IMG/VR virus record: IMGVR_UViG_3300036770_004143
Coordinates: 186,001 to 250,000 of that record
Length of the DNA stretch: 64,000 nt
Direction: 5' to 3' (one strand)
Part shown: positions 20,326 through 47,809 of the stretch, piece after piece
Layout: every line of letters begins with the position of its first letter
Numbering within the stretch: the first letter of the stretch is position 1
Translations under genes and position numbers: made by a program
The notes under the pieces: model-generated
What the model was told of the DNA's origin: nothing
Databases searched by the model: none
Seen by the model: only the letters and a program-made list of their open reading frames with translations

Positions 20326-20339
20326 AGTTGTTTTGTTTG

Positions 20340-20413
20340 TAATCCTGGTTGGATTTGAACCAACGATCCCCTAATTAAAAGTTAGGTGCTTTAAACCACT
20401 AAGCTACAGGATT
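20340..20413 (-). tRNA. tRNA-Lys(TTT)
   Basis: Cloverleaf; anticodon arm cctaa-CTTTTAA-ttagg. Confidence 0.9.
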
Positions 20414-20423
20414 ATTAAAAATT

Positions 20424-20496
20424 GTTACCACAACTGGATTTGAACCAATACTAACAGAATCAAAATCTGTGGTGCTACCTTTACACCATGTGGCAA
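20424..20496 (-). tRNA. tRNA-Gln(TTG)
   Basis: Anticodon arm acaga-TTTTGAT-tctgt; T loop TTCAAAT. Confidence 0.85.
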
Positions 20497-20504
20497 TTTA
20501 AAAA

Positions 20505-20700
20505 GAAATAAGTTTTTTGTCCCCGTTGAACATCATGATCCAGTTTTACCTGGATGGTTGGATTTTCCTAGTTGCTACCAAATTGGCCACAGTAGCCCAT
20601 AGTTATATCAAACTCTCGGTCACTTGCTAATATATCGCGAATCAAGCAAGTTAAACCTTACATATACCCTGGGGTTTCACCAGAGTCATCACTTATTTTC
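20505..20700 (-). ncRNA. Unassigned structured RNA (~195 nt)
   Basis: Terminal stem (gaaaataagt/acttatttc) plus four internal hairpins; no ORF. Confidence 0.55.
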
Positions 20701-20708
20701 ATCTTTTG

Positions 20709-20778
20709 AGGTTAGTGTTAGAATTGTACTAACTCTATGAGATTTGCAGTCTCACTGGTCTCCATGACCAAACTAACC
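20709..20778 (-). tRNA. tRNA-Cys(GCA), atypical T loop
   Basis: gtgaga-CTGCAAA-tctcat; T loop reads TACAATT. Confidence 0.75.
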
Positions 20779-20785
20779 ATAATTG

Positions 20786-20862
20786 GGTGTTTGATGGGAT
20801 TCGAACCCACATTTAATATGAGTCACAATCATACCCCAAAGGCCAATACGGGTTCCAAACAC
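20786..20862 (-). tRNA. tRNA-His(GTG)
   Basis: tatga-TTGTGAC-tcata; T loop TTCGAAT. Confidence 0.85.
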
Positions 20863-20864
20863 AG

Positions 20865-20935
20865 TGGTCTTATAGGGATTTGAACCCCAACTTCAGCATC
20901 CGTAGTGCTGTGTGCTGTCATTACACAATAAGACC
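20865..20935 (-). tRNA. tRNA-Arg(ACG)
   Basis: cagca-CTACGGA-tgctg. Confidence 0.9.
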
Positions 20936-20943
20936 AAAATCAA

Positions 20944-21015
20944 TCAAGCATTCTACTCCCAGCCCCGAGGAATTGTATCTAACTTAGCCCATCTCACCGC
21001 TGTGTGGGTACTTGA
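20944..21015. ncRNA. Small GC-rich structured element
   Basis: Closing stem tcaagca/tacttga with internal ccca/tggg pairing. Confidence 0.4.
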
Positions 21016-21029
21016 CCTTTTGTATTTTC

Positions 21030-21818
21030 CTAATTCAATTCAGGTATTTGTTCTTTTAAATACTTATAAATCTTCCAAGTTTGAATTTTAGGTGAAGAAA
21101 TAAATGGATATAAATTCTTCCAGTCTGTCTTTTTCATCACATCTAAAACTCTTTCTTGGTATGTTTTATTGTTTATAATCACATAATTTTCCTGACAAAA
21201 TGTTCCTATTTCCTTCACTTCTTTTCCAATACTTGCCCCATATGTATTCATAGCAAAATCAAAAGTTTCAGGTTTTTTATATGTTCCACCTCTTCTATAT
21301 TCACCAACAAATACATCATTTAACTTGTAATCTATTGCTTTTTTGTTAATCCCATTTTTAGGCCTTTGGTACACATTAAAACAACATAATAATTCAATAC
21401 CACTATATTTAATTAAAGGCAACACTTCTGAATGGATTAAATCAAACTCATACATTTGTTGATTATTGTTATATTGACTAACAGGTAATATAAAAGCAAT
21501 ATAATCACCCATTTTAGCTGCTTGTTTATAAAAAGCAACACTCAAAGTATTCCTTGTCCCAAATGGGGGGTTTCCAATAAACAACCTACCTTTCTTATAA
21601 GGTAGTTCAAGTTTTAGAAAATCTTGTTTAATAATACTTTTATGTTCAGGCTCTAAATCATAAGCAATGCAATTGGGTATCTGTAAACTAAAACTACCTC
21701 CACCAGCAGCTGGTTCAATTGTTTCAGTTATTTCAAATCCTAGATTATTTACAACATCAATACAATATTTTGCAAGTTCTTTTGGTGTATAATATTTGTC
21801 TAAATTTATTTTTGACAT
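21030..21818 (-). CDS. DNA amino-methyltransferase (N6A/N4C, NPPF type)
   Basis: YYTP, IEPAAGGGSF, DF and IGNPPFG motifs. Confidence 0.85.
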   Translation of the reverse strand: MSKINLDKYYTPKELAKYCIDVVNNLGFEITETIEPAAGGGSFSLQIPNCIAYDLEPEHKSIIKQDFLKLELPYKKGRLFIGNPPFGTRNTLSVAFYKQAAKMGDYIAFILPVSQYNNNQQMYEFDLIHSEVLPLIKYSGIELLCCFNVYQRPKNGINKKAIDYKLNDVFVGEYRRGGTYKKPETFDFAMNTYGASIGKEVKEIGTFCQENYVIINNKTYQERVLDVMKKTDWKNLYPFISSPKIQTWKIYKYLKEQIPELN

Positions 21819-21849
21819 GATTGTTTTTTTTTAAAAGTAAAACAGAAAG

Positions 21850-21975
21850 TGTGGGATTCAAACACCGCACATGATACCGACCATGATACCAACCATGATA
21901 CTTTTATCTTTTGCGTAGGTGGAAGATTCAAACCATACATGATACCATACATGATACCAATTACACCACACCTAC
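21850..21975 (-). repeat. Two degenerate tRNA-like units with CATGATAC repeats
   Basis: Five CATGATAC copies at 21870, 21882, 21894, 21938 and 21950; gtaggtg/cacctac stem; TTTGAAT T-like loops. Confidence 0.55.
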
Positions 21976-21982
21976 TTTAAAA

Positions 21983-22234
21983 TCACTTGGATTTTTTGCC
22001 ATCCAATTCTGTAAGTTTGTTTTCAAACTCTACAAGCCTTCTGTCAAATCTATTCTCAACCTCATCTATGATATTATAAATATCCCTGTGGAAGTTTGAA
22101 TTAGCATGTTGTTTGTCTTTTAATTCATCTGTGATTGCGTTCACTTTGGCTTTAAGATAAATAACACCAGTAAATGACCAAAATAATGTTACGATAATTG
22201 TGGTGACAATTGCACCTAATGCAAATTCTATCAT
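21983..22234 (-). CDS. Membrane-anchored coiled-coil protein
   Basis: Hydrophobic N-terminus. Confidence 0.6.
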   Translation of the reverse strand: MIEFALGAIVTTIIVTLFWSFTGVIYLKAKVNAITDELKDKQHANSNFHRDIYNIIDEVENRFDRRLVEFENKLTELDGKKSK

Positions 22235-22575
22235 AGTTCTGTTTTTAATTTACTTAAATCTTCATTTAATCTTCTAATAAATGATTCCTCACCATCATCA
22301 CCAGATACCAACCAATCAATCCTTTGTGCATAAATATATGCAATCTGTAAATGAGTTATTCCTTTTTTAAATTCTTCAATAACTTCATCTGGATATTTAT
22401 GCCAGAACATATCTTCTGGATACTTATTGAAATAATCATCATCAAAAGCACCCCAAGCACCATCTATAATTTCTTGTTCTGTTTTAACTCTACCATTATT
22501 TGCAATCAAATCTTCAATAGAATCAATCATATTCTTTATCTTAGATTGGTCATAGTCAAAAAATCCTCCAGACAT
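22231..22575 (-). CDS. Conserved phage protein (MSGG.FDY...RIDWLVSGDDGEE)
   Basis: Motif recognition; start moved to MSGGFF. Confidence 0.65.
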   Translation of the reverse strand: MSGGFFDYDQSKIKNMIDSIEDLIANNGRVKTEQEIIDGAWGAFDDDYFNKYPEDMFWHKYPDEVIEEFKKGITHLQIAYIYAQRIDWLVSGDDGEESFIRRLNEDLSKLKTEL

Positions 22576-22745
22576 ATTTGTTGCTTTTTTTTGTTTAGTA
22601 ATTAGGATAGTATTTGAATTAATGCCCCTAGTAATGCAATCACACCAAATATATAAACAATCATTGGGTCTAATGGATAACACCCTTCAACCATTACTTG
22701 ATGTAGTTCTTTTAAAAATCTTTTCATTTTTTTGATTTTAGTTAG

Positions 22746-22828
22746 TGAGGGTAATAGGATTTGAACCTATTCAGACATAATCATTTGATTTACAGTCAAA
22801 CCCAGCTCTCCCACTCTGGCGTACCCCC
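22746..22828 (-). tRNA. tRNA-Tyr(GTA)
   Basis: tttga-CTGTAAA-tcaaa; long variable arm. Confidence 0.9.
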
Positions 22829-22845
22829 TAGTTTAAATTTGTTTG

Positions 22846-22917
22846 AGCCAATAGAGGGATTTGAACCCCCAACCCCATCTTTACAAAAGACGTGTTCTAC
22901 CGTTGAACTATATTGGC
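22846..22917 (-). tRNA. tRNA-Thr(TGT)
   Basis: cgtct-TTTGTAA-agatg. Confidence 0.88.
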
Positions 22918-22921
22918 AATA

Positions 22922-23323
22922 TTACAATTTTATCTCGAACCTTTTCCGCATTTTATCAATTGCCTCGTCTGGCACATTGTGAACATTCTTCCCCCCATGC
23001 CTATTCTCAACAACTATGGAATAAACTCTATACCCATATTTTTCTGCTAACTCATAGTAGGGCTTCATTTCCCACTCTTGGGTGAATGTGTTAGATACAA
23101 CAATTCTATCAACATTATACCCAGAATTATCCACCTCCATCCACTTTCTAACTTCTTCTCTGCACCAAGCATGAGCCTCTTTCAATTTTGATGCATCAAA
23201 TTTATATTCACCATACTGCATAAAGTATCTATCTGCTTCAACCAATGATCCACCCAACTGGGCTGCCAATGTTGATTTACCTGAACCAGGTAGTCCTCTT
23301 AATAAGAAAAGTTCCTTTGCCAT
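22922..23323 (-). CDS. P-loop kinase (AAA_33 / polynucleotide-kinase-like)
   Basis: LLRGLPGSGKST, EADRYF, VVSNTFT and HNVP motifs. Confidence 0.85.
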   Translation of the reverse strand: MAKELFLLRGLPGSGKSTLAAQLGGSLVEADRYFMQYGEYKFDASKLKEAHAWCREEVRKWMEVDNSGYNVDRIVVSNTFTQEWEMKPYYELAEKYGYRVYSIVVENRHGGKNVHNVPDEAIDKMRKRFEIKL

Positions 23324-23337
23324 AATCTTCTTTTTAT

Positions 23338-23835
23338 TTAATAAACATTAAAAGGTAAGTTTGTGTTCAACACAGTATGACCTTCTTTTTTAACTTTTGA
23401 ACAAAAAGTTCTCAACATTTTAATAGCCTCTTCATTCTTTATTAAATCAACCATTGAAAGTCTCTTGCCACTTCCAGCATTAACAAAAGTCTGTATGGTA
23501 TATTTTGTTGTATCTCCATAAAGAATTCCCTTCTTTTCATCTTTCTTTATTGCTTGATTTGTTAACCAATTTTGGAACAAATCATCAACAACCCACTCCA
23601 ATTTATTACCATAACCTTCTATGCCTAGGCTATCACAATATTCTTCCATCTTTTTGAAAGCCTCTTTGGTTTTGGCTTCACCATCCCAAAGGTTGCAATC
23701 AGTACTCCCACCAGTTCCCCTATTTATACAATATCCAATTTTTTTGTTATCAAAAAAAATATCTGCTTGGAATGCATAAGTTTCTTCTGAAAACTTTGCA
23801 GAATATTTCACATTTTTTAACTTAATTCTTTCCAT
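23338..23835 (-). CDS. Hypothetical protein (SEET.AF.A..N.GTGG family)
   Basis: ORF; TATCTTTG motif upstream. Confidence 0.6.
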   Translation of the reverse strand: MERIKLKNVKYSAKFSEETYAFQADIFFDNKKIGYCINRGTGGSTDCNLWDGEAKTKEAFKKMEEYCDSLGIEGYGNKLEWVVDDLFQNWLTNQAIKKDEKKGILYGDTTKYTIQTFVNAGSGKRLSMVDLIKNEEAIKMLRTFCSKVKKEGHTVLNTNLPFNVY

Positions 23836-23918
23836 TGTTCTTTTGGTTTGATTACCTCACAAAGATAAACTAAAGTTTGCAGAAGTCCAAATGTAATGAT
23901 TATTTTTTTTTCAATTAT

Positions 23919-24518
23919 TTAATCTAAACTATTAGGAAAATACAACAAAGTTGGATTACGTTTCTGAATGTCAACCTGGGGATATGATTTCCTAAACATA
24001 TCAACATCAAATCTTTTTGTGATTAAATGATAACCACTTTTAGTTGGGATTACTGCTTCAACCTTATTACCCCCTGGTCTAGTTTCATCAAGTATAGCAA
24101 TAGTCTTTGCTAATTCTTTTTCATCTTTATCATCAATATCAACAATCCATCTATTCTCCATTCTTTTTACCTTCCCAACAACACTCTCAAATAAATTTTT
24201 CTGATTATGTTGTCCATTTTTGATTCTTTCAGCCAAAAGCATCATCATATCCAAGGCCACATCTTTATGGTTCTGTTTTTGAATGTGAATGTAGGTTCTT
24301 GCTTTGAAGAGTTCTGATAACTGCATAATCTCTTCATATTTGCTATCAAGATAATCCAGGCTATCAATACAATACGTTTTAATGGTTCTGGATGACTGGT
24401 GATTATCTCTCTCCTCTTTTGGTTGATCCTTCTTTCTTTTAAGAATATATAACATATAGAAATCACCCTCTTCTGTGAAGTTTAGTAATGGTTTGATTAT
24501 GTCCAGGTTGTTTATCAT
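23919..24518 (-). CDS. Possible AEP/PrimPol-superfamily protein
   Basis: WIVDID (DxD) and TKSGYHL (sGxH) motifs; start moved to MINNLD. Confidence 0.45.
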   Translation of the reverse strand: MINNLDIIKPLLNFTEEGDFYMLYILKRKKDQPKEERDNHQSSRTIKTYCIDSLDYLDSKYEEIMQLSELFKARTYIHIQKQNHKDVALDMMMLLAERIKNGQHNQKNLFESVVGKVKRMENRWIVDIDDKDEKELAKTIAILDETRPGGNKVEAVIPTKSGYHLITKRFDVDMFRKSYPQVDIQKRNPTLLYFPNSLD

Positions 24519-24576
24519 GTTTTTGTTTTTTTGATAAAGCAAAGATAAACCTAAAAACTGGTAAATGCAAATCTAT

Positions 24577-25059
24577 TTAAAACTTTTTCATTTTGTAATG
24601 AATGGCAATGAATTTCTCATGATTTATATCATTTTCATCACATATTTTAATGATTTCTCTTAATTTACCACTAACTTCTGAAACAACTTCACCTAATTTG
24701 TTTACCTCATCAATTAAGTTATCAATCTCTTCTTCTATGCTGGTATAACCCCCCTCTTCCCAATCAACATCATACAATGTTTCATCATCATCTAATGTGA
24801 TATATAGAAAGGCACTAAATTTACCACTATTATGTTCAATTTGAATATAAGATGCCACATCCATTGTATATAACTCAAAAAGAACCACATTTGGTTGTTC
24901 ATTTTCAATAGAAAACTGGATGCCCAGATTTTTTAGGTGTTCACTTACATTTTCAATAAACTCTGCACTATTTGCCATAACTTTACTGTCCTCAACCAAA
25001 TTTGTTGGTCTGGATTGAATAAGTTGTTTTAACCTATCAATATTTTCTTGTAATTTCAT
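24577..25059 (-). CDS. Hypothetical acidic protein with KLQE leader
   Basis: ORF; TATTTAT upstream. Confidence 0.65.
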   Translation of the reverse strand: MKLQENIDRLKQLIQSRPTNLVEDSKVMANSAEFIENVSEHLKNLGIQFSIENEQPNVVLFELYTMDVASYIQIEHNSGKFSAFLYITLDDDETLYDVDWEEGGYTSIEEEIDNLIDEVNKLGEVVSEVSGKLREIIKICDENDINHEKFIAIHYKMKKF

Positions 25060-25086
25060 ATAGTTCTTTTACAATAAATATATCCA

Positions 25087-25323
25087 TTAACTAATTAAAT
25101 CAAATGATACATTATTACTATCCATCAATTCATGTAAGGTTGTCCTAACTTGAACCAAAGCATCATGTACCTCCTGGCTCATTGTGTCTGGTGCATACTT
25201 TGTCTCTGACCTCAAGTGTTGATCCAGTTCATATAAAGTCATCATTATGTCCCTACCTTTTGCAGCCAACATAAATTGCTCCATATCCTCTGGTAGATTA
25301 AATTCCAATATTGCTTTTGCCAT
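25087..25323 (-). CDS. Conserved phage protein (KAILEFNLPED)
   Basis: Motif recognition. Confidence 0.65.
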   Translation of the reverse strand: MAKAILEFNLPEDMEQFMLAAKGRDIMMTLYELDQHLRSETKYAPDTMSQEVHDALVQVRTTLHELMDSNNVSFDLIS

Positions 25324-25328
25324 CTTAT

Positions 25329-25511
25329 TTAGTTTTTAATGAATTTATAAAGTTCAAGTAATAATAACCCAGCTTCAGCCTTGGTTAGAAACATCTTACC
25401 CCTATCATGATTGATATAGGTATGAACAACAAGGATTTCCTCTGAACCATTTGATTTATCAATGGTCACTACTGGTGCTTCAACATAAATTTCATTGGGT
25501 TCTGTAATCAT
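25329..25511 (-). CDS. Hypothetical protein
   Basis: ORF; TATCTTTG upstream. Confidence 0.55.
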   Translation of the reverse strand: MITEPNEIYVEAPVVTIDKSNGSEEILVVHTYINHDRGKMFLTKAEAGLLLLELYKFIKN

Positions 25512-25721
25512 TTTATTCTTGTTTAGACCTCAAAGATAGTAAAATACTTTTAATAATCCCAGGTAGATTTATCTACTTTTTTACCATTCATAATGCAATC
25601 AAACACATAATCCCATTTTTGATTTTTAGTGATATAATCCACTAAAATTTGGCTAAACCCCAAGGAAGTGGATCCGTTTTCTGTTTCTAATTTAATGTCT
25701 AATATTTTCATAATTTTTGTT

Positions 25722-26045
25722 TTAATATAAGTCTTCTGAAAACAATCTGTTGCCCCTAATTTGGGATAAATCAATTACCTGGTTTTCTTGTAATGCAATT
25801 TGAAGCCCCTCTTCACGGCTAACAAACCTATTTTTTGATGTCAAAAACCCTTGTTCATTTTCACCACTTTCAGCATCTCTTAACCCTGTAATAGCATATT
25901 TTGTGTAAATACATTGCCCATGCCTATGGCCACTAAAAACAATACCCCTATCAAGGTTTGCTGGAAGATAAACCTCAATTGGTAATTCCTTTTTAAGTTC
26001 AATGTTTTTATACCAAATAGCAGCACATATTATTTTCTCATTCAT
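25722..26045 (-). CDS. Conserved phage protein (CAAIW..GHRH..QGFLTS.NRFV)
   Basis: Motif recognition. Confidence 0.65.
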   Translation of the reverse strand: MNEKIICAAIWYKNIELKKELPIEVYLPANLDRGIVFSGHRHGQCIYTKYAITGLRDAESGENEQGFLTSKNRFVSREEGLQIALQENQVIDLSQIRGNRLFSEDLY

Positions 26046-26589
26046 GTTTTTGTTTATATTCTTTAATAAAAGTTTCTAAATCTTGTGGTATATCACCGTA
26101 ATTATGTAATTCATATGCAAAGTTTTCAACCCATTCTTCTTCATCACCATATTCTAAATATTCATAACCAAATAAATCATATTCTAATTCACATATTGCA
26201 TGTCCAAGTTCATGAAATATTGTTGTTTCAACTGTCACCCATAATGGTACATTATATTCTTTAGAACCTTCTAAAATATCCTTTTCTGATAAAATAACTA
26301 TTGGTATTGATGAACTTGTACCACTTCTAAATCTACCTAAAGCACCTTCTCCAATATTATTGACAAATATTATTCTAATATCCTTGAATAAATCTATTTT
26401 ATTTTTAAATATTTCAATTGCTTCCCTAGAAAACTTAACTATATCAGAATGTACTTTGGTTATATCTTTAACCCCATAGTCATTAATAATATGGTTATAG
26501 TCATCACTTTCTTTATTTAAAAGAAATTCAATATCCTCATTCAAAAAATCTTGAATTGTGGTTTTAATAATTCTTCTCAAATCTTTCAT
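26038..26589 (-). CDS. Putative zinc metalloprotease-like protein with FLNE leader
   Basis: HELGH (HExxH) followed by EEEWVE. Confidence 0.55.
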   Translation of the reverse strand: MKDLRRIIKTTIQDFLNEDIEFLLNKESDDYNHIINDYGVKDITKVHSDIVKFSREAIEIFKNKIDLFKDIRIIFVNNIGEGALGRFRSGTSSSIPIVILSEKDILEGSKEYNVPLWVTVETTIFHELGHAICELEYDLFGYEYLEYGDEEEWVENFAYELHNYGDIPQDLETFIKEYKQKHE

Positions 26590-26629
26590 ATTTTATTTTA
26601 TATATAAATATTAAGTTTTAAAAGTTTTG

Positions 26630-26715
26630 TGGTCAGGATAGGATTCGAACCTATATTGTTGAATTACCCAGCTTCAACTGCTTAAGTATAGCGTTTACCA
26701 TTCCGCCACCTGACT
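26630..26715 (-). ncRNA. tRNA-like RNA E1 (no canonical anticodon arm)
   Basis: agtcagg/cctgacc acceptor, Leu-type D arm, TTCGAAT T arm. Confidence 0.7.
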
Positions 26716-35639: not shown

Positions 35640-36371
35640 CTAATCTGGCAAACTTGTTCCCCTCTTTAACACAACTTTATATGCCATCTTATTTCCTGTT
35701 CTTATGGCTTCTATGATGCTTTCATTCTTATATAGGGATAATGCCAAGGCAGCGGTAAAAGTGTCTCCTGCTCCACTTATGTCAATGGTGGGGGCATTTT
35801 TCTCTTGCATGTAAACTATACCATTATGGGAAACTCCATTACCACCCATTGTTATGATAAACTTCTCTCTATTCTGATTATTAATCAAATCCTTATTGTT
35901 CTCATACTCATCCTGGTTTAGTTTAATATAATCAATGCTATTGATAATATCATCTGTTAATCTCCTCTTGCTATCCAATATGGTTGTCTTGGATTGCTTT
36001 GCTATTTTAACAATATCATCATTAGTCAAATAACCCTTATTGTAATCACTAATAATAGTGATACCATATTTGTTATCAATGTCACCATAATAAGAATCAA
36101 CATTATCCTCACCTGTGTCAACCCTTATAAAAGAATGATTGGTTTTCTCATCAACATACCTCTTCTTCTTTATCTTATTCTTCTGTGTAATTAACCTTAT
36201 GCTCACATTTGAATCCATATTAATAACATTATTATATACATTCATAGCCATCCCACCAGCCTTAACCTTATGTGTTGGAATTAATACCGGAACAGGTGCT
36301 TCTGGTGATAACCTTGTGCTTTTTGTGTAAACATATATGTCTCTACAACTTTCTCCTATTACTATAATCAT
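35640..36371 (-). CDS. PfkB-family sugar kinase (HldE/RfaE kinase-domain-like)
   Basis: RLSPEAPVPV, GGMAMNV, ISDYNKG and DISGAGDT motifs. Confidence 0.85.
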   Translation of the reverse strand: MIIVIGESCRDIYVYTKSTRLSPEAPVPVLIPTHKVKAGGMAMNVYNNVINMDSNVSIRLITQKNKIKKKRYVDEKTNHSFIRVDTGEDNVDSYYGDIDNKYGITIISDYNKGYLTNDDIVKIAKQSKTTILDSKRRLTDDIINSIDYIKLNQDEYENNKDLINNQNREKFIITMGGNGVSHNGIVYMQEKNAPTIDISGAGDTFTAALALSLYKNESIIEAIRTGNKMAYKVVLKRGTSLPD

Positions 36372-37078
36372 TATCTATATATTTTTCCTTTTATAAACCC
36401 AGGTTTAATCATTTCTCTTAATTCTTCATCTGTATATTTTTCTAATTTTGTACTACCCATATACAACATACCCCCAACCTTTAAGCCTTTTGGTAATGAG
36501 GTTATTTTTATATGTCTTAAATCCAAATTACCACCAACTTTCAATCCTTCTGGTAATGATGTTATTTGTTCACAGCCAAATAATGACAAATCACGCCCAA
36601 CTTTAAAACCTTTGGGTAATGAGGTTATCTTTGTATATGATAAATCCAAATTACCCCCAACTTCCAAGCCTTCTGGTAATGAGGTTATGTTTGAATCATA
36701 TAAACTCAAATTACCCCCAACTTTCAATCCTTCTGATAATGAAGTTATATTTGTATATTCTAAATTCAAATCCATTTTAACTTTTAATCCTTTAGGTAAT
36801 GAAGTTATGTCTGTGTCGTTCAAACTCAAATGACCCCCAACTTCCAAACCTTCTGGTAATGAGGTTATTTTTGATTGTGCTAAATACAAATCACCCCCAA
36901 CTTTAAAACCTTCTGGTAATGAGGTTATATTTGTATATTCTAAATCCAAATCACCTTCAATGGTTAAATCTTTCTCTGTTAACGGTATATCATTCATATG
37001 TTTCCACAAAAATGGTGCTCTACGCTTCTCCTTCTCTTCAAGGAACTCAAATATTCTTTTTAATTGTTCTTCTTCCAT
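36371..37078 (-). CDS. LRR-like repeat protein
   Basis: LPEGLxVGG repeats. Confidence 0.85.
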   Translation of the reverse strand: MEEEQLKRIFEFLEEKEKRRAPFLWKHMNDIPLTEKDLTIEGDLDLEYTNITSLPEGFKVGGDLYLAQSKITSLPEGLEVGGHLSLNDTDITSLPKGLKVKMDLNLEYTNITSLSEGLKVGGNLSLYDSNITSLPEGLEVGGNLDLSYTKITSLPKGFKVGRDLSLFGCEQITSLPEGLKVGGNLDLRHIKITSLPKGLKVGGMLYMGSTKLEKYTDEELREMIKPGFIKGKIYR

Positions 37079-37605
37079 TATCTATATATATTTCCTTTTA
37101 TAAACCCAGGTTTAATCATGTCTCTTATCTCATCATCTGTGTATTTGGCTAAATTTGTTCCATAAATATACAAATATGTACCAACCTCCAATCCTTTTGG
37201 TAATGAAGTTATTTTTGTATGTCTTAAATCCAAATTACCGCCAACTTTCAATCCTTCTGGTAATGATGTTATTTGTTCACAGCCAAATAACGACAAGTCA
37301 CGCCCAACTTTAAAACCTTCTGGTAGTGAAGTTATTTTACTATTTTTTAAATATATTATACCATCAACTTTTAAACTTTTTGGTAATGAGGTTATGGCTA
37401 AACCAATCAAACTCAAGGAACCCCCCACTTCCAATCCTTCTGGCAATGATGTTATTTTTGAACCTTTTAAATTCAAATTACCTTTAACAATTAATTCTTC
37501 TTTTGTTAATGGCATTTCATTCTTAAATTTCCATAAAAATGGTACTTTGTGACCTTCCTTCTCTTCAAGGAACTCAAATATTCTTTTTAGTTGTTCTTCT
37601 TCCAT
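37078..37605 (-). CDS. LRR-like repeat protein
   Basis: LPEGLxVGG repeats. Confidence 0.85.
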   Translation of the reverse strand: MEEEQLKRIFEFLEEKEGHKVPFLWKFKNEMPLTKEELIVKGNLNLKGSKITSLPEGLEVGGSLSLIGLAITSLPKSLKVDGIIYLKNSKITSLPEGFKVGRDLSLFGCEQITSLPEGLKVGGNLDLRHTKITSLPKGLEVGTYLYIYGTNLAKYTDDEIRDMIKPGFIKGNIYR

Positions 37606-38369
37606 TATCTTACTATTCTTCCGTTTATAAACCCAGGTTTAATCATTTCTCTTAATTCTTCATCATCTAAATCCATTGCAAATACACTTGCTCGGATAAA
37701 TAAATCACCCCCAACTTGCAAACCTTTTGGAATCGGTGTCACATTGGTGTTATATATATTTAAATACCCACCAACTTTTAATCCTTCTGGTAATGAAATA
37801 GTCCCCAACCCAGTTAAATCCAAATCACCTTTAATATCCAAAGTGTTAGTAATAAAAGTTTTTGAAGTTATTAATCCACCAATTTTTAAACCATTTGGTA
37901 TTTTTGTTAACCTATCTAATTCTGTGTATTTCACAATTAAAATACCCCCAACTTGCAAACCTTTTGGAAGTGATTCCACTTGTGTATCTGATAAATCCAA
38001 AGAACCACCAACTTGCAAATCTTCTGGTAATGAGGTTATGTTTGCATATGATAAAGTTAAATCAACCCCAACTTTTAATCCCCTTGGTAATGATTTTATA
38101 AGACTATGATCCAAATATAGGCTACCACCAACTTCCAAACCTTCTGGTAATGTTTCTATATCTGATTCAGTTAAATTCAAATCACCTCCAACTTTCAATC
38201 CTTCTGGTAGTGATTCTATATTTGAATCTGAAAAATCCAAATCACCTTTAACATTTAAATCTTCTTCTGTTAATGGTTGATTATTTATTAACTTCCAAAT
38301 AAATGGCACTTTATGTTCTCCTTTTCCTTCAAGGAATTCAAATATTCTTTTTAGTTGCTCTTTTTCCAT
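37605..38369 (-). CDS. LRR-like repeat protein
   Basis: LPEGLxVGG repeats. Confidence 0.85.
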   Translation of the reverse strand: MEKEQLKRIFEFLEGKGEHKVPFIWKLINNQPLTEEDLNVKGDLDFSDSNIESLPEGLKVGGDLNLTESDIETLPEGLEVGGSLYLDHSLIKSLPRGLKVGVDLTLSYANITSLPEDLQVGGSLDLSDTQVESLPKGLQVGGILIVKYTELDRLTKIPNGLKIGGLITSKTFITNTLDIKGDLDLTGLGTISLPEGLKVGGYLNIYNTNVTPIPKGLQVGGDLFIRASVFAMDLDDEELREMIKPGFINGRIVR

Positions 38370-38372
38370 AAG

Positions 38373-38888
38373 TTACTCCCATTCATCATCTATTTCTCCA
38401 CCCACTTGGCCACCAGTTGATTCAATCTTGTTATATAACTGATCAACTGTATATGATTTGGCAAGTGGAGTATTAGCAATATAAAAATTATTATAAATGT
38501 ACAAATTATTTGGCACATTTGTTATTTCATTACATCCCATAATATATAAATTCTGCCCAACATACAAATTGTCTGGAAGACTTGATATATTAGTATAATC
38601 TAAATATAAATCATCTTGAACATATAATCTATCTGGTAGATTTATTAACTCTTTGCAAAAACTCAAGTTCATTGTACCCTTAATATATAAGTCATTTGGC
38701 AATTTTCTTATATCAGAATTATTTACATCTAAATAACCATCATATACATATCTTTTATCACTTGAATATGCTTCAAGTTCATCAACCAAATCTTGCTTAA
38801 GAATGAAGTTTACCATTCTTATAGGTTGATCCACATTCTCTCTCTCTTTGAGAAATTTGAATATCTTGCTTAATTGTTCTGCTCTCAT
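38373..38888 (-). CDS. Divergent LRR-like repeat protein
   Basis: LPxxLY(V/I) variant repeats; related N-cap. Confidence 0.8.
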   Translation of the reverse strand: MRAEQLSKIFKFLKERENVDQPIRMVNFILKQDLVDELEAYSSDKRYVYDGYLDVNNSDIRKLPNDLYIKGTMNLSFCKELINLPDRLYVQDDLYLDYTNISSLPDNLYVGQNLYIMGCNEITNVPNNLYIYNNFYIANTPLAKSYTVDQLYNKIESTGGQVGGEIDDEWE

Positions 38889-39583
38889 GGTCTTCTTATT
38901 CTTCCTAATACAAATCCAGGTTTTATCATTTCTCTTATTTCATCATCTGTGTATTTTATTGCTATAAACAAATCACCCCCAACTGCCAATCCTTTTGGCA
39001 ATGTTTTTATTGATAACATAGATAAATCCAAGTCTTGGCCAACTTTTAAATCCTCTGGTAATGAGTTTATTTTTGTGTTATTCAACCACAAGTTGCCCCA
39101 AACTACCAATCCTTCTGGTAATGATTCTATTTTTGATTTTATTAAATCCAAACTACCCTGGAGTTTTAAACCTTTTGGTAATGAAGTTATTTCTGAACCA
39201 AGAAGACTCAAATTACGATAAACTTCCAAGCCTTCTGGTAATGAGGTTATTTTTGAATTATTTAAATTTAAATTACCCGTAACTTTTAATCCTTTTGGTA
39301 ATGATTTTATACTTGATGCGTTTAAGTCCAAATCACCCCCAACTTCCAAGCCTTCTGGTAGTGATTTTAAAAATTTGGTCATATCCAAGTGCAAATCACC
39401 ATAAACTTTCAAGCCTTCTGGTAATGAGGTTACGTTACTATACGACAAATCCAAATCATCATCAACAATTAATTCTTCTTTTGTTAATGGTTGATTGTTT
39501 ATAAACTTCCATCTTAATGGCACTTTATGTTCCCCTTTCCTTTCAAGGAAATCAAATATTCTTTTTAATGCTTCGTTTTTCAT
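38885..39583 (-). CDS. LRR-like repeat protein
   Basis: LPEGLxV repeats. Confidence 0.85.
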   Translation of the reverse strand: MKNEALKRIFDFLERKGEHKVPLRWKFINNQPLTKEELIVDDDLDLSYSNVTSLPEGLKVYGDLHLDMTKFLKSLPEGLEVGGDLDLNASSIKSLPKGLKVTGNLNLNNSKITSLPEGLEVYRNLSLLGSEITSLPKGLKLQGSLDLIKSKIESLPEGLVVWGNLWLNNTKINSLPEDLKVGQDLDLSMLSIKTLPKGLAVGGDLFIAIKYTDDEIREMIKPGFVLGRIRRP

Positions 39584-39990
39584 TATCCTATTATTTCACC
39601 TTTTATAAATCCAGGTTTTATCATTTCTATTATATCCTCATGATAATAATCTTCACTTATGGGTGTTCTATAGATATACAATTTACCACCAACTTTCAAG
39701 CCTTTTGGTAGTGAATTTATTAATGAACCAGATAAATCCAAATTACCACCAACTTCCAACCCTTCTGGTAATGATTTTATTATTGTTTCATCTAATTCCA
39801 AAGTACCCTCAACTTTCAAGCCTTCTGGCAATGATGTTATATTTATATCTGTTAAAATCAAATCACCTTTAACATTTAATTCATCTTCTGTTAGTGGTAT
39901 ATTATTTTTCAACTTCCAAATAAATGGTGCTTTATGTTCCCCTTTCCTTTCAAGGAAATCAAATATTCTTTTTAATACTTCTTTTTTCAT
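39583..39990 (-). CDS. LRR-like repeat protein (short)
   Basis: LPEGLxV repeats. Confidence 0.85.
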   Translation of the reverse strand: MKKEVLKRIFDFLERKGEHKAPFIWKLKNNIPLTEDELNVKGDLILTDINITSLPEGLKVEGTLELDETIIKSLPEGLEVGGNLDLSGSLINSLPKGLKVGGKLYIYRTPISEDYYHEDIIEMIKPGFIKGEIIG

Positions 39991-40769
39991 TACCTTTTTA
40001 TTTTTCCTTTTATAAATCCAGGTTGAATCATCTTTCTTAATTTATAAGTAGTAAGTTCATTTAAAGATGAATATTCCAACATTAAATCTCCAAAAACTTC
40101 TAATCCTTTTGGCAATGACTTTATTGTTGTATATTGCAATAATAAATCACCACCAACTTTCAAACCTTCTGGCAATGATTTTATTTGCTCGCAACCAAAT
40201 AATAACAAATCACCCCAAACTTCCAATCCTTCTGGTAATGAAGTTAATTCTTTGCAATATGCTAAATTCAATTTACCATTAACTTTCAAATCATCTGGTA
40301 ATGTTTCTATCTTTGACTCTCGTAAATATAACTCACCACCAACTTCCAATCCTTTTGGTAATGATTTTATACCTGTATCTAATAAATTTAGAACACCATC
40401 AACTTTTAAGCCTTCTGGTAATGATTCTATTTCTGAACGCATTAAATTTAATGATCCAACTTTCAAACTTTTTGGTAGTGTTTTTATTGACGTATAAGAT
40501 AAATCCAAATTACCACCAACTTCCAACCCTTCTGGTAAAGAGATTATATTTGACCATTGTAAATTTAAATTACCACCAACTTTCAATCCTTTTGGTAATG
40601 AGGTTATGTCTTTCATACTCAAATTCAAATCACCTTTAATATCCAAATCTTTCTTTGTTAATGGCTCATTAAAGACTATTCTCCATAGTAATGTCCCTTT
40701 TGCTTGGTGTGATTTCTTTTCCTTATCTTCAAGAAATTCAAATATTCTTTTTAATGCTTCTTTTTCCAT
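39990..40769 (-). CDS. LRR-like repeat protein (long)
   Basis: LPEGLxV repeats. Confidence 0.85.
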   Translation of the reverse strand: MEKEALKRIFEFLEDKEKKSHQAKGTLLWRIVFNEPLTKKDLDIKGDLNLSMKDITSLPKGLKVGGNLNLQWSNIISLPEGLEVGGNLDLSYTSIKTLPKSLKVGSLNLMRSEIESLPEGLKVDGVLNLLDTGIKSLPKGLEVGGELYLRESKIETLPDDLKVNGKLNLAYCKELTSLPEGLEVWGDLLLFGCEQIKSLPEGLKVGGDLLLQYTTIKSLPKGLEVFGDLMLEYSSLNELTTYKLRKMIQPGFIKGKIKR

Positions 40770-41308
40770 TATCTTATTATTTCCCCTTTTATAAATCCAG
40801 GTTTAATCATATCTCTTAATTCTTTATCTATGTATTCTAATAATGCTGTATTTTTAATAATCAACTCACCTTTAACTTCCAACCCTTTTGGCAATAAGGT
40901 TATCTTTGTTCTTCTTAAATCCAAAGTGCCACCAACTTGCAAACCTTTTGGAAGCAATTCCACTTGTGTATCTGATAAATCCAAATCCCTACCAACTTGC
41001 AAATCTTCTGGTAATGAGGTTATGTTTGAACCTTCCAAATATATATCACGTCTAACATATAAATCACTTGGTAATGATTTTAATTTAGGTGTATAAGATA
41101 AATTCAAATTGCCACCAATTTTTAAACCTTCTGGTAAGTAGGGTATATCTGAATGTTCTAAAAACAAACCACCTTTAATATCCAAATCTTCCTTTGTTAA
41201 TGGCTCATTAAATTCAATTTTCCATCTCAAAGTTCCTTTTACTTTGGCCAATTTATTTTCCTTCTCTTCAAGGAATTCAAATATTCTTTTTAGTTGTTCT
41301 TTTTGCAT
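40769..41308 (-). CDS. LRR-like repeat protein
   Basis: LPxxLxV repeats. Confidence 0.85.
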   Translation of the reverse strand: MQKEQLKRIFEFLEEKENKLAKVKGTLRWKIEFNEPLTKEDLDIKGGLFLEHSDIPYLPEGLKIGGNLNLSYTPKLKSLPSDLYVRRDIYLEGSNITSLPEDLQVGRDLDLSDTQVELLPKGLQVGGTLDLRRTKITLLPKGLEVKGELIIKNTALLEYIDKELRDMIKPGFIKGEIIR

Positions 41309-41775
41309 TATTTATGTATTTTTCCTTTCACAAATCCAGGTTTTATCATTTCTAATAATTCATAACGTTCATATTTCATCATTGTTGTCAATTCCAAATG
41401 TAAATCACCACCAACTTCCAATCCTTTTGGTAATGATTTTATATCTGTATATGTTAAATCCAAATCACCACCAACTTTTAACCCTTCTGGTAATGATTCT
41501 ATTATTGAGCCTTCCAAGTATATATCACCTTTAACATCTAAATCACTTGGTAATGATTTTAATTTAGGTGTATAAGATAAATTCAAATCACCAGCAACTT
41601 TCAAACCTTCTGGTAAGGATTTTATTTTTGAAAATGCTAAATTCAAATCACTTGTAACATTTAAATCTTCCTTTACTATTGGCTCATTATTTACTAATTT
41701 CCATTTAAATGGTGTTTTATGTTCTCCCTTCCTTTCAAGGAAATCAAATATTCTTTTTAATGCTTCTTTTTCCAT
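41308..41775 (-). CDS. LRR-like repeat protein
   Basis: LPxxLxV repeats. Confidence 0.85.
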   Translation of the reverse strand: MEKEALKRIFDFLERKGEHKTPFKWKLVNNEPIVKEDLNVTSDLNLAFSKIKSLPEGLKVAGDLNLSYTPKLKSLPSDLDVKGDIYLEGSIIESLPEGLKVGGDLDLTYTDIKSLPKGLEVGGDLHLELTTMMKYERYELLEMIKPGFVKGKIHK

Positions 41776-42245
41776 TATCTATATATTTCTCCTTTTATAA
41801 ACCCAGGTTTAATCATTTCTCTTAATTCATCATCTGTGTATTTTGTTAATGGTGTATAACGAATATTCAAATCACCATCAACATATAAACTTTCTGGTAA
41901 TGAGGTTATGTTATTACAATAAGCTAAATTCAAACCACCACCAACTTTCAAACCTTCTGGTAATGATGTTATTCTGGTATGAAGTAAATTTAATGCTCCA
42001 CCAACTTTTAATCCTTTTGGTAATGAATTTAATTTTTCAGAATATGATAAAACCAAATCACCACTAACTTTCAATCCTTCTGGTAATGAGGTTATCTTTG
42101 AATCAAATAAATACAAACGACCCTTAATATTTAATTCTTCTTTTGTGAATGGTATTTCACATTTGACTTTAAATATAAACGGCACTTTATGTTTTTCCTT
42201 CTCTTCAAGGAATTCAAATATTCTTTTTAGTTGTTCTTTTTTCAT
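41775..42245 (-). CDS. LRR-like repeat protein (first in the operon)
   Basis: Repeats; TATTTAT motif upstream. Confidence 0.85.
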   Translation of the reverse strand: MKKEQLKRIFEFLEEKEKHKVPFIFKVKCEIPFTKEELNIKGRLYLFDSKITSLPEGLKVSGDLVLSYSEKLNSLPKGLKVGGALNLLHTRITSLPEGLKVGGGLNLAYCNNITSLPESLYVDGDLNIRYTPLTKYTDDELREMIKPGFIKGEIYR

Positions 42246-42337
42246 TATAAAATTTATTACAATAAATATACAAAATAAAAAAACCCCTAGACTAATCCAA
42301 GAGTTTTTTTAAATTTAAAAAATGTCCAAGAAGATTA

Positions 42338-43357
42338 TTAGTTTTTGTCCTTCAATAAGAACTTATTGCTAATGGCTTTAAATGAAATAACATTGTCAGA
42401 TGTCCTAATTACAATACCTTCTCTTTCTGTTTTTTCATTCAAGGATGACTTACCTTCGGCAAACTTCAATAACTCATCAATTGTTTTTGGCAAATCTGTT
42501 CCAGCCCTAATTGATAAGAGTGGTGCAACCTCCAACTGGTTCTGGGCCATAAACATAGCAAACTCTGCGTAATTAAACCTTTTGTGAGCATCAATGTCAA
42601 ATGCTGTAAAGAACCTAACTGTATGACCTTTTATCTTGTAGCGATTTCCCTGGATGCCCTCACCAATCAACTCACCTTGTATTGCAAAGTTCTTGTTTTT
42701 GGCTCTCATCTTGTTCTCCAAATCAAGTTCCCTTGCAACCTTCCAGAAAGTATTCCCCTCTGTTTCCAATAGTTCAAGATTTCTTGAACAAACCCCAAAC
42801 TCACCATTGTTTATGTAGAATGTTGCAGAGGATCCATCCAGTTTTTCTGTTATATAGAAATCATCATTTGATTCTATATATGTCTTATAATCATTTGGAA
42901 TATTCTGGGCTCTAATTTCATCTGTCTTGGAAATGAAGGATGGAAACATTCCTTTTGCCAGCCCAGAAAGTTCAGGTGAAATTGGTGTTTCATACTTCAC
43001 AATACCCAACATTTCTGTCACATCCATACCCTCTTCAAGAGATATTTCAGAACCTAAAACAGAAATAGGCAATATCAACCCCTGGGAGATTTGCCCCCTC
43101 ATTTTTATAGTTCTCAATCGAAAACCCTCTGCTTCAGTTGATTTCCTATATGAAGATTTCCTTAAAAATTCAAACTCTTCCCTAATGGGTAAGAAGGAAT
43201 CAATCTCACAATACACAATGAAATCACCCACCTTATGTTCAACATTCTTGGCAACAACAACTTGCCATCCATCAACAATGGCTAGTTCAATGTTGTCAGC
43301 ACCTTCAATAGGCTTTAAATCTGATATTTTTCTAACGCTTGCAAGTTTCCTTTCCAT
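42338..43357 (-). CDS. RNA ligase (DRB0094 / Rnl2-like family)
   Basis: KLASVRKI, GADNIE, VYCEIDS, TEKLDGSS (motif I), IQGELIG and REGIVI..FKAISN.FL motifs. Confidence 0.9.
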   Translation of the reverse strand: MERKLASVRKISDLKPIEGADNIELAIVDGWQVVVAKNVEHKVGDFIVYCEIDSFLPIREEFEFLRKSSYRKSTEAEGFRLRTIKMRGQISQGLILPISVLGSEISLEEGMDVTEMLGIVKYETPISPELSGLAKGMFPSFISKTDEIRAQNIPNDYKTYIESNDDFYITEKLDGSSATFYINNGEFGVCSRNLELLETEGNTFWKVARELDLENKMRAKNKNFAIQGELIGEGIQGNRYKIKGHTVRFFTAFDIDAHKRFNYAEFAMFMAQNQLEVAPLLSIRAGTDLPKTIDELLKFAEGKSSLNEKTEREGIVIRTSDNVISFKAISNKFLLKDKN

Positions 43358-46269: not shown

Positions 46270-46683
46270 TTAAAAGTAATGAATCCTCTTTAAATACCCA
46301 TCATCTCCAACCATATTTCTCAATTCACTATTACTATATTCACCTAATGGTGATGTATCAATGTATAAAGTGCCACCAACTTTCAATCCTTCAGGTAATG
46401 AGTGTAAGTTGTAACAATTTTGTAAAATCAAATTACCTCTAACTATTAACCCTTCTGGTAATGAACTTATATTATCACAAAAACTTAAAATCAAATCACC
46501 ACTAACTTCCAATCCTTCTGGTAGTGATTCTATATTTGAATATGTCAAATCCAAATCACCTTCAATATCTAAATCTTTTTCTGTTAATGGTATTTCATTT
46601 TTCCATTTCCATAAGAATGGTGGATTGTGTTCTTCCTTTTCTTCAAGGAATTCAAATATTCTTTTTAATGCTTCTTTTTTCAT
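46270..46683 (-). CDS. LRR-like repeat protein
   Basis: Same family as the 36.4-42.2 kb array. Confidence 0.85.
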   Translation of the reverse strand: MKKEALKRIFEFLEEKEEHNPPFLWKWKNEIPLTEKDLDIEGDLDLTYSNIESLPEGLEVSGDLILSFCDNISSLPEGLIVRGNLILQNCYNLHSLPEGLKVGGTLYIDTSPLGEYSNSELRNMVGDDGYLKRIHYF

Positions 46684-47330
46684 TATCTAAATATTCCTCC
46701 TTTTATAAATCCAGGTTTAACCATTTCTCTTAATTGATTATCTGAATATTCTTCTAATGCCGTACCTAATATAAATAGGTGTTCACCAATTTCTAATCCT
46801 TTTGGTAATGAGGTTATTTTTGTGCCTGATAAATCCAAATGCTCACTAACTGTAAGTCCTTGGGGTAATGATTTTAATGTTGTACAACTATTTAAAGCAA
46901 GATAACCATCAACCTTTAAACCTTTTGGTAAAGATTGTATTTTTGAAAAAGCCAAATCAATACTCCCATTAACCTCCAAATCTTTTGGCAGTATCTCAAT
47001 GGATGTGTATGATAAAATTAAATCTTCTTCAACTACCAATCCTTTTGGTAAATATTTTATGCTTGAATATGATAAATTGAAATGTTCTCCAACTTCCAAT
47101 CCTTCTGGTAATGATTCTATTTTTGAAGCATATAAACTTAAATTACCCCCAACCTTCAACCCTTTTGGTAATGAGGTAATTTCTGATCCTTCAAAAATTA
47201 AATCCCCTTTAACATTTAACTCTTCTTTTGTTAATGGTATATTATTAATCAATTTCCATTTAACTGGTAGATTATACCCTTCCTTCTCTTTTAGGAATTC
47301 AAATATTCTTTTTAAGGTTTCTTTTTTCAT
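46683..47330 (-). CDS. LRR-like repeat protein
   Basis: Same family. Confidence 0.85.
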   Translation of the reverse strand: MKKETLKRIFEFLKEKEGYNLPVKWKLINNIPLTKEELNVKGDLIFEGSEITSLPKGLKVGGNLSLYASKIESLPEGLEVGEHFNLSYSSIKYLPKGLVVEEDLILSYTSIEILPKDLEVNGSIDLAFSKIQSLPKGLKVDGYLALNSCTTLKSLPQGLTVSEHLDLSGTKITSLPKGLEIGEHLFILGTALEEYSDNQLREMVKPGFIKGGIFR

Positions 47331-47338
47331 ATCATATA

Positions 47339-47809
47339 TTAATTATCATCATCTTCTTCATAATCATCTTCATCTTCATAATCATAATCAATGTAATATT
47401 CAGAAATTATATCACCTTTTATAAAACCAGGTTCAATTGATTTTCTTAAATGATCATCATTTTTATAGTAATAAGGTAGTTCAGATTCAGTTACATCTAA
47501 ATGCCCCCCAACTTTCAATCCTTTTGGTAATGAAGTTATGCTTGTTCTTACTAAAAATAAACTATCACCAATTTCCAATCCTTCTGGTAGTGATTTTATT
47601 TTTGAACGAGATAAATCTAACCAACCACTAATTTTCAAGCCTTTTGGTAATGAGGTAATTTTTCTATCCTGTAAATCCAAATCACCTTTAATATTTAATT
47701 CTTCTTCTGTTAATGGCTCACCATTTTCCCATTTCCACAAGAATGGAGTATTATGTTCTCCCTTCTTTTCAAGGAACTCAAATATTCTTTTTAATGCTTC
47801 TTTTTCCAT
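47339..47809 (-). CDS. LRR-like repeat protein with acidic tail
   Basis: Same family; ends DYDYEDEDDYEEDDDN. Confidence 0.85.
   Translation of the reverse strand: MEKEALKRIFEFLEKKGEHNTPFLWKWENGEPLTEEELNIKGDLDLQDRKITSLPKGLKISGWLDLSRSKIKSLPEGLEIGDSLFLVRTSITSLPKGLKVGGHLDVTESELPYYYKNDDHLRKSIEPGFIKGDIISEYYIDYDYEDEDDYEEDDDN

Follow-up and report, generated by a model that had tools for sequence, protein, structure and literature searches.

Leucine-rich repeat genes of a T4-like jumbo phage probably evolve by gene turnover and homologous exchange between paralogs

An array of short, head-to-tail genes encoding leucine-rich repeat (LRR) proteins lies in the IMG/VR virus record IMGVR_UViG_3300036770_004143, a 270,075-bp genome with a CheckV completeness rating of ~90%. 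We analyzed bases 186001-250000 of this record, a stretch of 64,000 nucleotides that we call the window and that sets our numbering unless genome coordinates are given. The array (36371-42245, minus strand) is one of nine clusters of a 41-member family that very probably evolves by gene duplication and loss combined with homologous exchange between copies. Stretches of ~40-300 nt have moved between paralogs that are neighbors, that lie 3 kb apart, or that are on opposite strands and separated by 132 kb. Some of the exchanges postdate divergence from relatives at ~90-97% identity, and between relatives at this distance whole genes have been gained, lost and relocated.

The array comprises eleven head-to-tail minus-strand genes encoding proteins of 135-259 aa, ten of them LRR genes and one a divergent member. 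For comparison we used, among other relatives, L171, a European Nucleotide Archive (ENA) contig with a syntenic main array and an RNA ligase gene of 87-94% nucleotide identity. The array genes on which the argument draws are as follows.

41775-42245, minus strand: LRR gene 1, 156 aa, 4 repeats; query for fold prediction and homology searches
41308-41775, minus strand: LRR gene 2, 155 aa; has block 2 (below) in common with gene 3
40769-41308, minus strand: LRR gene 3, 179 aa, 5 repeats; clearest mosaic of the window
39990-40769, minus strand: LRR gene 4, 259 aa, 9 repeats; L171 ortholog at 93% nucleotide identity
39583-39990, minus strand: LRR gene 5, 135 aa, 3 repeats; 91% ortholog at another position in the L171 array
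38885-39583, minus strand: LRR gene 6, 232 aa, 8 repeats; no ortholog in L171
38373-38888, minus strand: divergent member, 171 aa, repeats and C-terminus differ; 95% nucleotide identity in L171
37605-38369, minus strand: LRR gene 8, 254 aa; holds 37948-38044, the partner of gene 3 in block 3
37078-37605, minus strand: LRR gene 9, 175 aa, 5 repeats; block 1 partner (37218-37319)
36371-37078, minus strand: LRR gene 10, 235 aa, 8 repeats; block 1 partner (36511-36612)

An earlier sequence-only reading of the window had pointed to three near-identical DNA blocks shared by otherwise divergent genes, and direct comparison reproduced all of them: block 1 (36511-36612 and 37218-37319) spans 102 nt with 3 mismatches, block 2 (41060-41109 and 41539-41588) spans 50 nt without mismatch, and block 3 (37948-38044 and 40932-41028) spans 97 nt with 6 mismatches in two patches (offsets 23-24 and 54-58). 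All of the blocks are in frame and lie within minus-strand genes of one family. The partners had been described as non-adjacent paralogs, which holds for block 3 (37605-38369 and 40769-41308, with four genes between them) but not for the other two, whose partners adjoin (36371-37078 and 37078-37605 for block 1; 40769-41308 and 41308-41775 for block 2).

Because the genome is AT-rich with strong codon bias, we compared the blocks with a null model in which every protein sequence was kept and codons were redrawn from the family's own usage. Across all pairs, identical residues use the same codon at a frequency of 0.74, compared with 0.58 expected from codon usage. Runs of identical codons exceed the pair-specific null at all three blocks (p <= 0.001 for block 1, 0.002 for block 2 and 0.001 for block 3), and the top run scores across the family are 102, 35, 29, 28, 26, 26, 23, 22 and 22, against a null maximum of 12 for the fifth-largest score. 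The blocks thus exceed what protein conservation and AT-rich codon bias would produce.

Mosaicism extends well beyond these three blocks. All-versus-all blastn combined with sliding painting showed discrete stretches of 93-100% identity on a best-match background of ~73-89%, and codon-level alignments showed runs of identical codons with sharp bounds. We also performed a 3SEQ-type scan with exact maximum-descent p-values over all triplets of the 41 paralogs (63,960 ordered triplets); 115 of them remain significant after Bonferroni correction, and these place 20 different genes in the 'child' position. Gene 3 is closest to three different paralogs along its length (corrected p 0.002-0.02): nt ~166-270 are nearest to 41308-41775, nt 281-377 to 37605-38369, and nt 401-540 to the genome gene g94070 (G000:C1:94070-94666), which lies 132 kb away on the opposite strand.

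Synonymous sites tell the same story. In six of seven block pairs, pS (the proportion of synonymous differences) is 0.07-0.15 inside the block and 0.30-0.42 outside it, and the seventh pair has 0.08 versus 0.22; block 1 shows 0.14 inside versus 0.37 outside. This 3-6-fold contrast rules out protein-level constraint as the cause. It also bears on the idea that the genes arose by tandem duplication and then diverged unevenly without any exchange, the blocks being slow-evolving remnants of recent whole-gene duplications, in which case synonymous divergence would be expected to be steady along the gene. Consistent with such a history, blocks 1 and 2 join adjacent genes, and the block 1 pair is near-identical in its first 50 nt and last 45 nt and has no significant triplet in the scan. 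For block 1 alone, tandem duplication with uneven divergence may be the explanation. Beyond the synonymous contrast, however, a single gene is closest to three paralogs along its length, stretches match paralogs better than orthologs (below), and partners lie up to 132 kb apart on opposite strands. Duplication without exchange is refuted as a general explanation, and we consider it very improbable overall.

The exchanged tracts range from ~40 to 302 nt. The largest is a perfect 302-nt repeat shared by genes 94070 and 96267 (G000:C1:94130-94431 and 96327-96628, locus L084), which lie 2.2 kb apart; no conversion tract found in the genome is longer or younger. The shuffling had been proposed to act at the level of cassettes, and this part did not hold: neither tract lengths nor switch points keep a fixed repeat phase, so 'cassette' names the outcome rather than a precise mechanism. 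Repeat modules are indeed exchanged, as proposed, yet not they alone, since the N- and C-terminal modules and whole genes move as well. We also considered whether the block ends mark a breakpoint phase and rejected this, as apparent ends necessarily fall where variable codons begin. Concerted evolution was likewise rejected as the main mode, as paralogs within L007 or within this genome are not generally closer to one another than to genes of other genomes.

Orthologs in relatives allow some of these events to be placed in time. Over nt 61-362 of genes 94070 and 96267, the two paralogs match at 302 of 302 positions in this genome, compared with 284 of 302 in a relative at ~90-97% identity (IMG sample 3300037502), and the flanks are 44-80% identical. 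Over the same tract, orthologs match at 296 and 288 of 302 positions between the genomes, as opposed to 302 of 302 between the paralogs. In block 3, at seven sites (gene 3 nt 285-310, window 40999-41024), gene 3 agrees with gene 8 and with the L171 ortholog of gene 8, whereas its own L171 ortholog differs. This four-taxon comparison delimits one further feature.

40991-41028, minus strand: younger part of block 3, from the four-taxon comparison with L171

The rest of block 3 is common to all four sequences and is therefore older. At the 3′ end of gene 3, the last 140 nt (40769-40908, minus strand) match g94070 at 130 of 140 positions, versus 110 of 140 for the gene's own L171 ortholog; the 60 nt just upstream match that ortholog at 59 of 60. 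Block 2 is also present in the L171 ortholog and thus predates the split from L171. Together, the four-taxon results and the age of block 2 indicate that exchange has been repeated, taking place both before and after these lineages diverged.

The arrays differ between relatives in gene content as well. Compared with IMG sample 3300037502, the 93-97 kb array has 6 genes here and 10 in the relative, with changed order; the 150-154 kb array has 7 here and 5 there, and the 40-44 kb array 8 here and 11 there. L171 keeps four genes in the same order at 90-95% identity (40769-41308, 39990-40769, 38373-38888 and 37605-38369) and has the ortholog of 39583-39990 at a different position, sharing 5 of 10 window array genes; five window genes are without an L171 ortholog, and seven L171 genes are without an ortholog in the window. 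A second, smaller array within the window shows the same behavior.

46270-47809, minus strand: second array, three family genes (46270-46683, 46683-47330 and 47339-47809); six genes here in a 97% relative

In the 97% relative (L003:3655-7088), the insertion that holds the three extra genes falls precisely on the start codon of the 47339-47809 ortholog. The leading gene of the three shares ~95% identity with a solo gene of our genome (G000:C1:174051-174665), with flanks that have no homology.

Such turnover raises the question of whether the mosaics reflect exchange between co-infecting phages, in which homologous recombination at conserved gene ends brings in alleles or whole genes and the mosaics record the mixing of a population gene pool. 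Relatives with 90-95% identity in the genes they share differ in about half of their array content, two strains carry one whole gene at different loci with non-homologous flanks, and the phage and its relatives are present together in many samples; moreover, the patterns in which an ortholog differs can equally be read as imported alleles. On the other hand, perfect 302-nt identity within one genome between divergent flanks requires an intragenomic event, and both partners of blocks 2 and 3 and of the 3′ block of gene 3 are in this genome. Import between phages is possible but doubtful as the explanation of the mosaics. It is compatible with exchange among resident copies, and both probably act.

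Given that the genome is a short-read metagenome assembly, we also considered whether paralogous repeats had been joined into chimeras. In Logan contigs the whole array is fragmented into pieces of 200-800 bp, and the contigs of several relatives end at arrays. Contigs from another sample, however, reproduce five arrays at 99.96-100% identity over 20 kb each, indicating that the arrays are stable within a strain and that their assembly is reproducible. The same mosaic ortholog is found in two ENA assemblies of a relative, L171 and L172, with k141-style and scaffold-style contig names, and most blocks are 93-97% identical, whereas a chimera would be exact to one parent on each side. An assembly artefact is thus a most improbable source of the mosaics. 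Four independent tests (triplets, synonymous sites, four-taxon comparisons and independent assemblies) therefore bear out the proposal that paralogs exchange sequence by gene conversion or recombination, making new combinations.

Programmed diversification, whether by a diversity-generating retroelement (DGR), a site-specific shufflon, or copy-choice cassette assembly like that of lamprey variable lymphocyte receptors (VLRs), would fit the hypervariable positions on the binding face described below and the modular repeats with conserved ends. A DGR had not been indicated in the window, and this extends to the genome: a search for reverse transcriptase (PF00078) gave no match across the ~90%-complete 270-kb record and detected its positive controls. 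The block mismatches are not adenine-specific, as in a DGR, but include A/G and T/C changes, whichever strand is read, as well as clustered patches of several bases. All 41 genes are complete open reading frames (ORFs) with both caps, unlike a VLR-type arrangement of an incomplete gene with capless cassettes. Furthermore, arrays are identical between samples of the same strain, and Logan contigs gave no reliable joints; the many candidate joints had short sides with unknown letters between them and were read as other paralogs or phages. We judge programmed diversification to be extremely unlikely.

Exchange instead looks like the ordinary, homology-driven type. The genome encodes a T4 Gp23-type major capsid protein and a UvsX-like recombinase (PHROG 97, E 3e-15), which together identify it as a T4-like jumbo phage, and T4-type phages replicate through recombination. 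Exchanges would take place by gene conversion and unequal crossing-over, driven by the phage's own UvsX-type machinery during recombination-dependent replication. The first ~50 nt and last 50-70 nt are >90% identical in nearly all members and every 60-nt unit has a conserved stretch; these conserved gene ends and unit parts could keep the exchanging copies in register. Recombination between co-infecting relatives would probably add to intragenomic exchange, the two being inseparable for most events, and selection would favor new binding surfaces.

The proteins that would present these surfaces follow a common plan. A hidden Markov model (HMM) built from window members found, by hmmsearch, the 41 paralogs in clusters at ~40-44, 93-97, 103-105, 120, 150-154, 174, 205, 222-228 (the window array) and 232-234 kb, making up ~8% of the genome as estimated from gene coordinates; tblastn gave 68 matches spread over the nine clusters. 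In all but three divergent members, 53 residues precede the first LP motif and are followed by 3-10 units of 20 aa and a 41-residue tail. Unit spacing is 20-21 aa across the family, and protein lengths are accordingly quantised (~134, 155, 175, 195 ... 275 aa). The ~50-aa helical N-terminal module and the ~40-aa C-terminal module are both conserved, and both are present in all 41 members. Family N-termini are charged and helical (consensus MEKEQLKRIFEFLEEKE), and no signal peptide was found in them by inspection. One member consists of the N-terminal module without LRR units, which suggests that this module has a role of its own.

19033-19371, minus strand: N-terminal-module-only member, 112 aa

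Alignment of 124 units of exactly 20 aa showed L, I or V near-invariant at positions 1, 5, 7, 11, 13 and 18 and S or T at 16, and the family has the tandem 20-30 aa units of LxxLxLxx(N/T/S)xL type that define an LRR. For gene 1, an AlphaFold2 model from a 23-sequence alignment has a predicted local distance difference test (pLDDT) score of 92.7 and strands with a period of 20, and its structural matches at Z 9-14.2 are all LRR proteins, led by Vibrio FlrP and followed by Leptospira LRR proteins, SHOC2 and the LRR domains of IpaH, SspH and SlrP. The predicted fold is a curved LRR solenoid. Pfam LRR models nevertheless stay below their cut-offs for one member (LRR_4 at 23.3 bits with a cut-off of 27, LRR_8 at 20 with 27, and LRR_1 at 17.6 with 20.6), four other members have no Pfam LRR match, and a PHROGs search of the family returned only one PHROG without a name. 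The family is a divergent LRR subtype outside the Pfam models.

Variation within the units is concentrated on one predicted surface. Across the same 124 units, entropy is 2.9-3.7 bits at positions 10, 12, 14, 15 and 17, versus 0.1-0.7 at the L/P/V/I scaffold positions. These five are the x positions of xLxLxx(T/S)x, which form the concave binding face in known LRR structures, and the most variable residues thus map to the concave face of the predicted solenoid. Between gene 41775-42245 and its 86% ortholog in L081, the ratio of nonsynonymous to synonymous change (dN/dS) is 2.8 at variable-position codons and 0.55 elsewhere, both from small counts.

The family is not confined to this phage. A word search found 1,647 relatives in metagenomes, nearly all of them viral, and many IMG/VR contigs carry family arrays with up to 14 genes per 20 kb. 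Among ESM Atlas clusters, the nearest hold up to 1,437 members and are 97-100% viral (85% in the lowest-ranked row shown), and matches in cellular genomes are limited to the LRR core. Among the latter, a Rhabdochlamydiaceae symbiont of Dictyostelium giganteum (NZ_OZ197277.1) has at least five loci with the same LRR unit subtype, at 42-54% identity to the LRR core; none of the loci (L088-L090, L096 and L098) has the N-terminal module of the phage family. Sequencing runs of 13 studies, which covered freshwater, wastewater, runoff and subsurface samples, contain DNA nearly identical to the array. By blastn against INPHARED phage records, the array had no relative, and the only matches were weak ones to the RNA ligase gene.

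We tentatively suggest that the family forms a repertoire of binders for host or competitor proteins, since its members are small soluble LRR domains without a signal peptide, with a variable binding face, dozens of paralogs, rapid turnover and an accessory-gene location. The proteins would be cytoplasmic binders of host or rival-element proteins, acting as host-takeover or counter-defence factors. The N-terminal module, the most conserved part, could act simply as a cap or, alternatively, as a docking or capsid-targeting tag common to the members; it may resemble T4 capsid-targeting sequences. If it is a common tag, many binders would be delivered or anchored alike.

Several observations weigh against parts of this account. 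The missing triplet for block 1 has been noted, and those significant triplets that have the divergent members w19033, w38373 or g95626 as background may be inflated by poor alignment. Direction and non-reciprocity of exchange are not readable from the sequences: each four-taxon result would also fit a relative's copy overwritten by a third paralog, or an allele acquired from a different phage. Samples of the same strain show no variation in the arrays, so that exchange is evolutionary rather than frequent or programmed. Finally, the dN/dS contrast is based on ~10 substitutions, and function is deduced from the predicted fold and the pattern of variability.

The closest solved relative is Vibrio FlrP (PDB 8Z5U chain 0), found by phmmer at E 5.8e-18 in two stretches and by structure at Z 14.2, with a root-mean-square deviation of 2.7 Å over 131 residues at 31% identity. 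It shares the 20-aa unit LPxGLxVxGxLxL and is likewise a small single-domain protein. FlrP, however, carries a Sec signal peptide and belongs to the periplasm, where it binds the rod of the polar flagellar motor, and it is not presented as a member of a multigene family (bioRxiv 10.64898/2025.12.04.692373), while the phage proteins begin with a hydrophilic helical module and their N- and C-terminal modules do not match it. The bacterial effectors IpaH, SspH1, SspH2 and SlrP, in which the LRR is the target-binding part, resemble the family in unit length and LP motif, with sequence matches at E 2e-6 to 2e-3 (SlrP and SspH1 at 2e-6 to 3e-5 by phmmer against PDB) and structural matches at Z 9-10. 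In contrast to these effectors, the phage proteins are 134-275 aa long, lack a secretion signal, and end ~41 aa after the last unit, with no Pfam match to the NEL E3 ubiquitin-ligase domain. They are not members of the IpaH/SspH/SlrP effector family.

Multigene families of repeat proteins are familiar from mimiviruses and poxviruses, which carry ankyrin, LRR and FNIP families. The likeness lies in lineage-specific expansion of a small binding module to dozens of copies, often in tandem, and giant-virus LRR proteins are among the weak structural matches in BFVD; the difference is that the setting here is a tailed phage with a bacterial host. For jumbo phages, a ~35-copy zinc-ribbon expansion is described in Bacillus phage G, in an overview that holds nothing on LRR (PMC7824862). 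Plant nucleotide-binding LRR receptor (NLR) and R-gene clusters such as RPP8 (PMC6771003) share with the phage family their tandem clusters, hypervariable xLxLxx positions, patchwork exchange between paralogs and copy-number variation between close relatives, and can be grouped with cassette-based bacterial antigenic variation as birth-and-death evolution with ectopic gene conversion. Those systems are owned by hosts or cellular pathogens, whereas the repertoire here is phage-owned. Moreover, neither a single expression site nor silent cassettes are evident in the phage arrays. Closer to the phage itself, promoter/stem-loop (PeSL) cassettes mediate the shuffling of hyperplastic regions in T4-type phages. 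These regions too are found in T4-type phages, consist of small accessory gene blocks, and turn over fast by homologous recombination at short conserved sequences. In the LRR arrays, by contrast, the gene ends and repeat scaffold that provide the homology are themselves coding, intergenic cassettes are absent because the genes abut with TAATG or ATGA overlaps, and the single hairpin lies upstream of the array.

The junctions between array genes are mostly 1-nt TAATG overlaps, with one ATGA overlap and one 3-nt gap. The conserved last codons of each array gene (IKGEI..R) include AAGGAG ~13 nt before the next ATG, a motif absent upstream of the first array gene. Given this motif and the TAATG stop/start overlaps, the 3′ ends may be conserved at the nucleotide level for translation of the following gene as well as for the protein itself. 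A promoter scan was uninformative (41 sites versus 49.8 expected by chance), and a TTTATA/GATAAT promoter match repeated at gene junctions was rejected as merely the conserved coding end. Long antisense ORFs at 37591-38109 (+), 38874-39221 (+) and 40252-41534 (+) were likewise rejected as genes, being by-products of periodic AT-rich coding repeats. The divergent member 38373-38888 has LPDxLYVxxxLYL-type repeats and an acidic C-terminus unrelated to that of the family, and is the best-conserved array gene in L171.

The array is flanked upstream by an RNA ligase gene and downstream by a PfkB-like kinase gene and an AAA_28 gene.

42338-43357, minus strand: RNA ligase gene (PF21189 and PF09414); upstream flank and synteny anchor
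42276-42311, minus strand: terminator-like hairpin (16-bp stem, then a T run) in the gap from the RNA ligase stop to the first array gene; putative, by consensus match only
35640-36371, minus strand: PfkB-like kinase gene, downstream flank; gene start overlaps the final stop codon of the array

Just upstream of the RNA ligase gene, L171 has an HSP70/MreB-like gene and an SNase gene (L171:1149-3026), where the window has small ORFs and the three-gene mini-array instead, so the neighborhood of the array is variable too. GC content is ~30%, and nearly all genes lie on the minus strand. Elsewhere, the window contains a cluster of eight tRNA genes (20339-26715, minus strand; Lys, Gln, Cys, His, Arg, Tyr, Thr and Leu), an ORF whose N-terminus is GIY-YIG homing-endonuclease-like (2027-3121, minus strand), and a DNA methyltransferase gene (19408-20325, minus strand; PHROG 116, E 3e-67).

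Birth-and-death evolution with ectopic conversion is a familiar process; what is unusual is the carrier, a tailed phage with 41 copies, and in the literature searched we found no description of a recombining LRR family in a tailed phage. Large, fast-evolving, self-recombining repeat-protein families are a hallmark of arms races, as in plant NLRs, lamprey VLRs, pathogen antigens, and the ankyrin and LRR families of giant viruses. It is conceivable, though we would not yet favor it, that the 41 genes are a phage repertoire directed against host proteins, defence systems among them, that LRR segments and whole genes exchanged within the genome and between phages keep this repertoire renewed, and that the genes thereby form a viral counterpart of host LRR immune-receptor clusters across a clade of freshwater T4-like jumbo phages. 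If the proteins do bind host factors, they would represent a large untapped set of natural, phage-made binders, and the family would be a tractable model of how recombination generates diversity in recognition.

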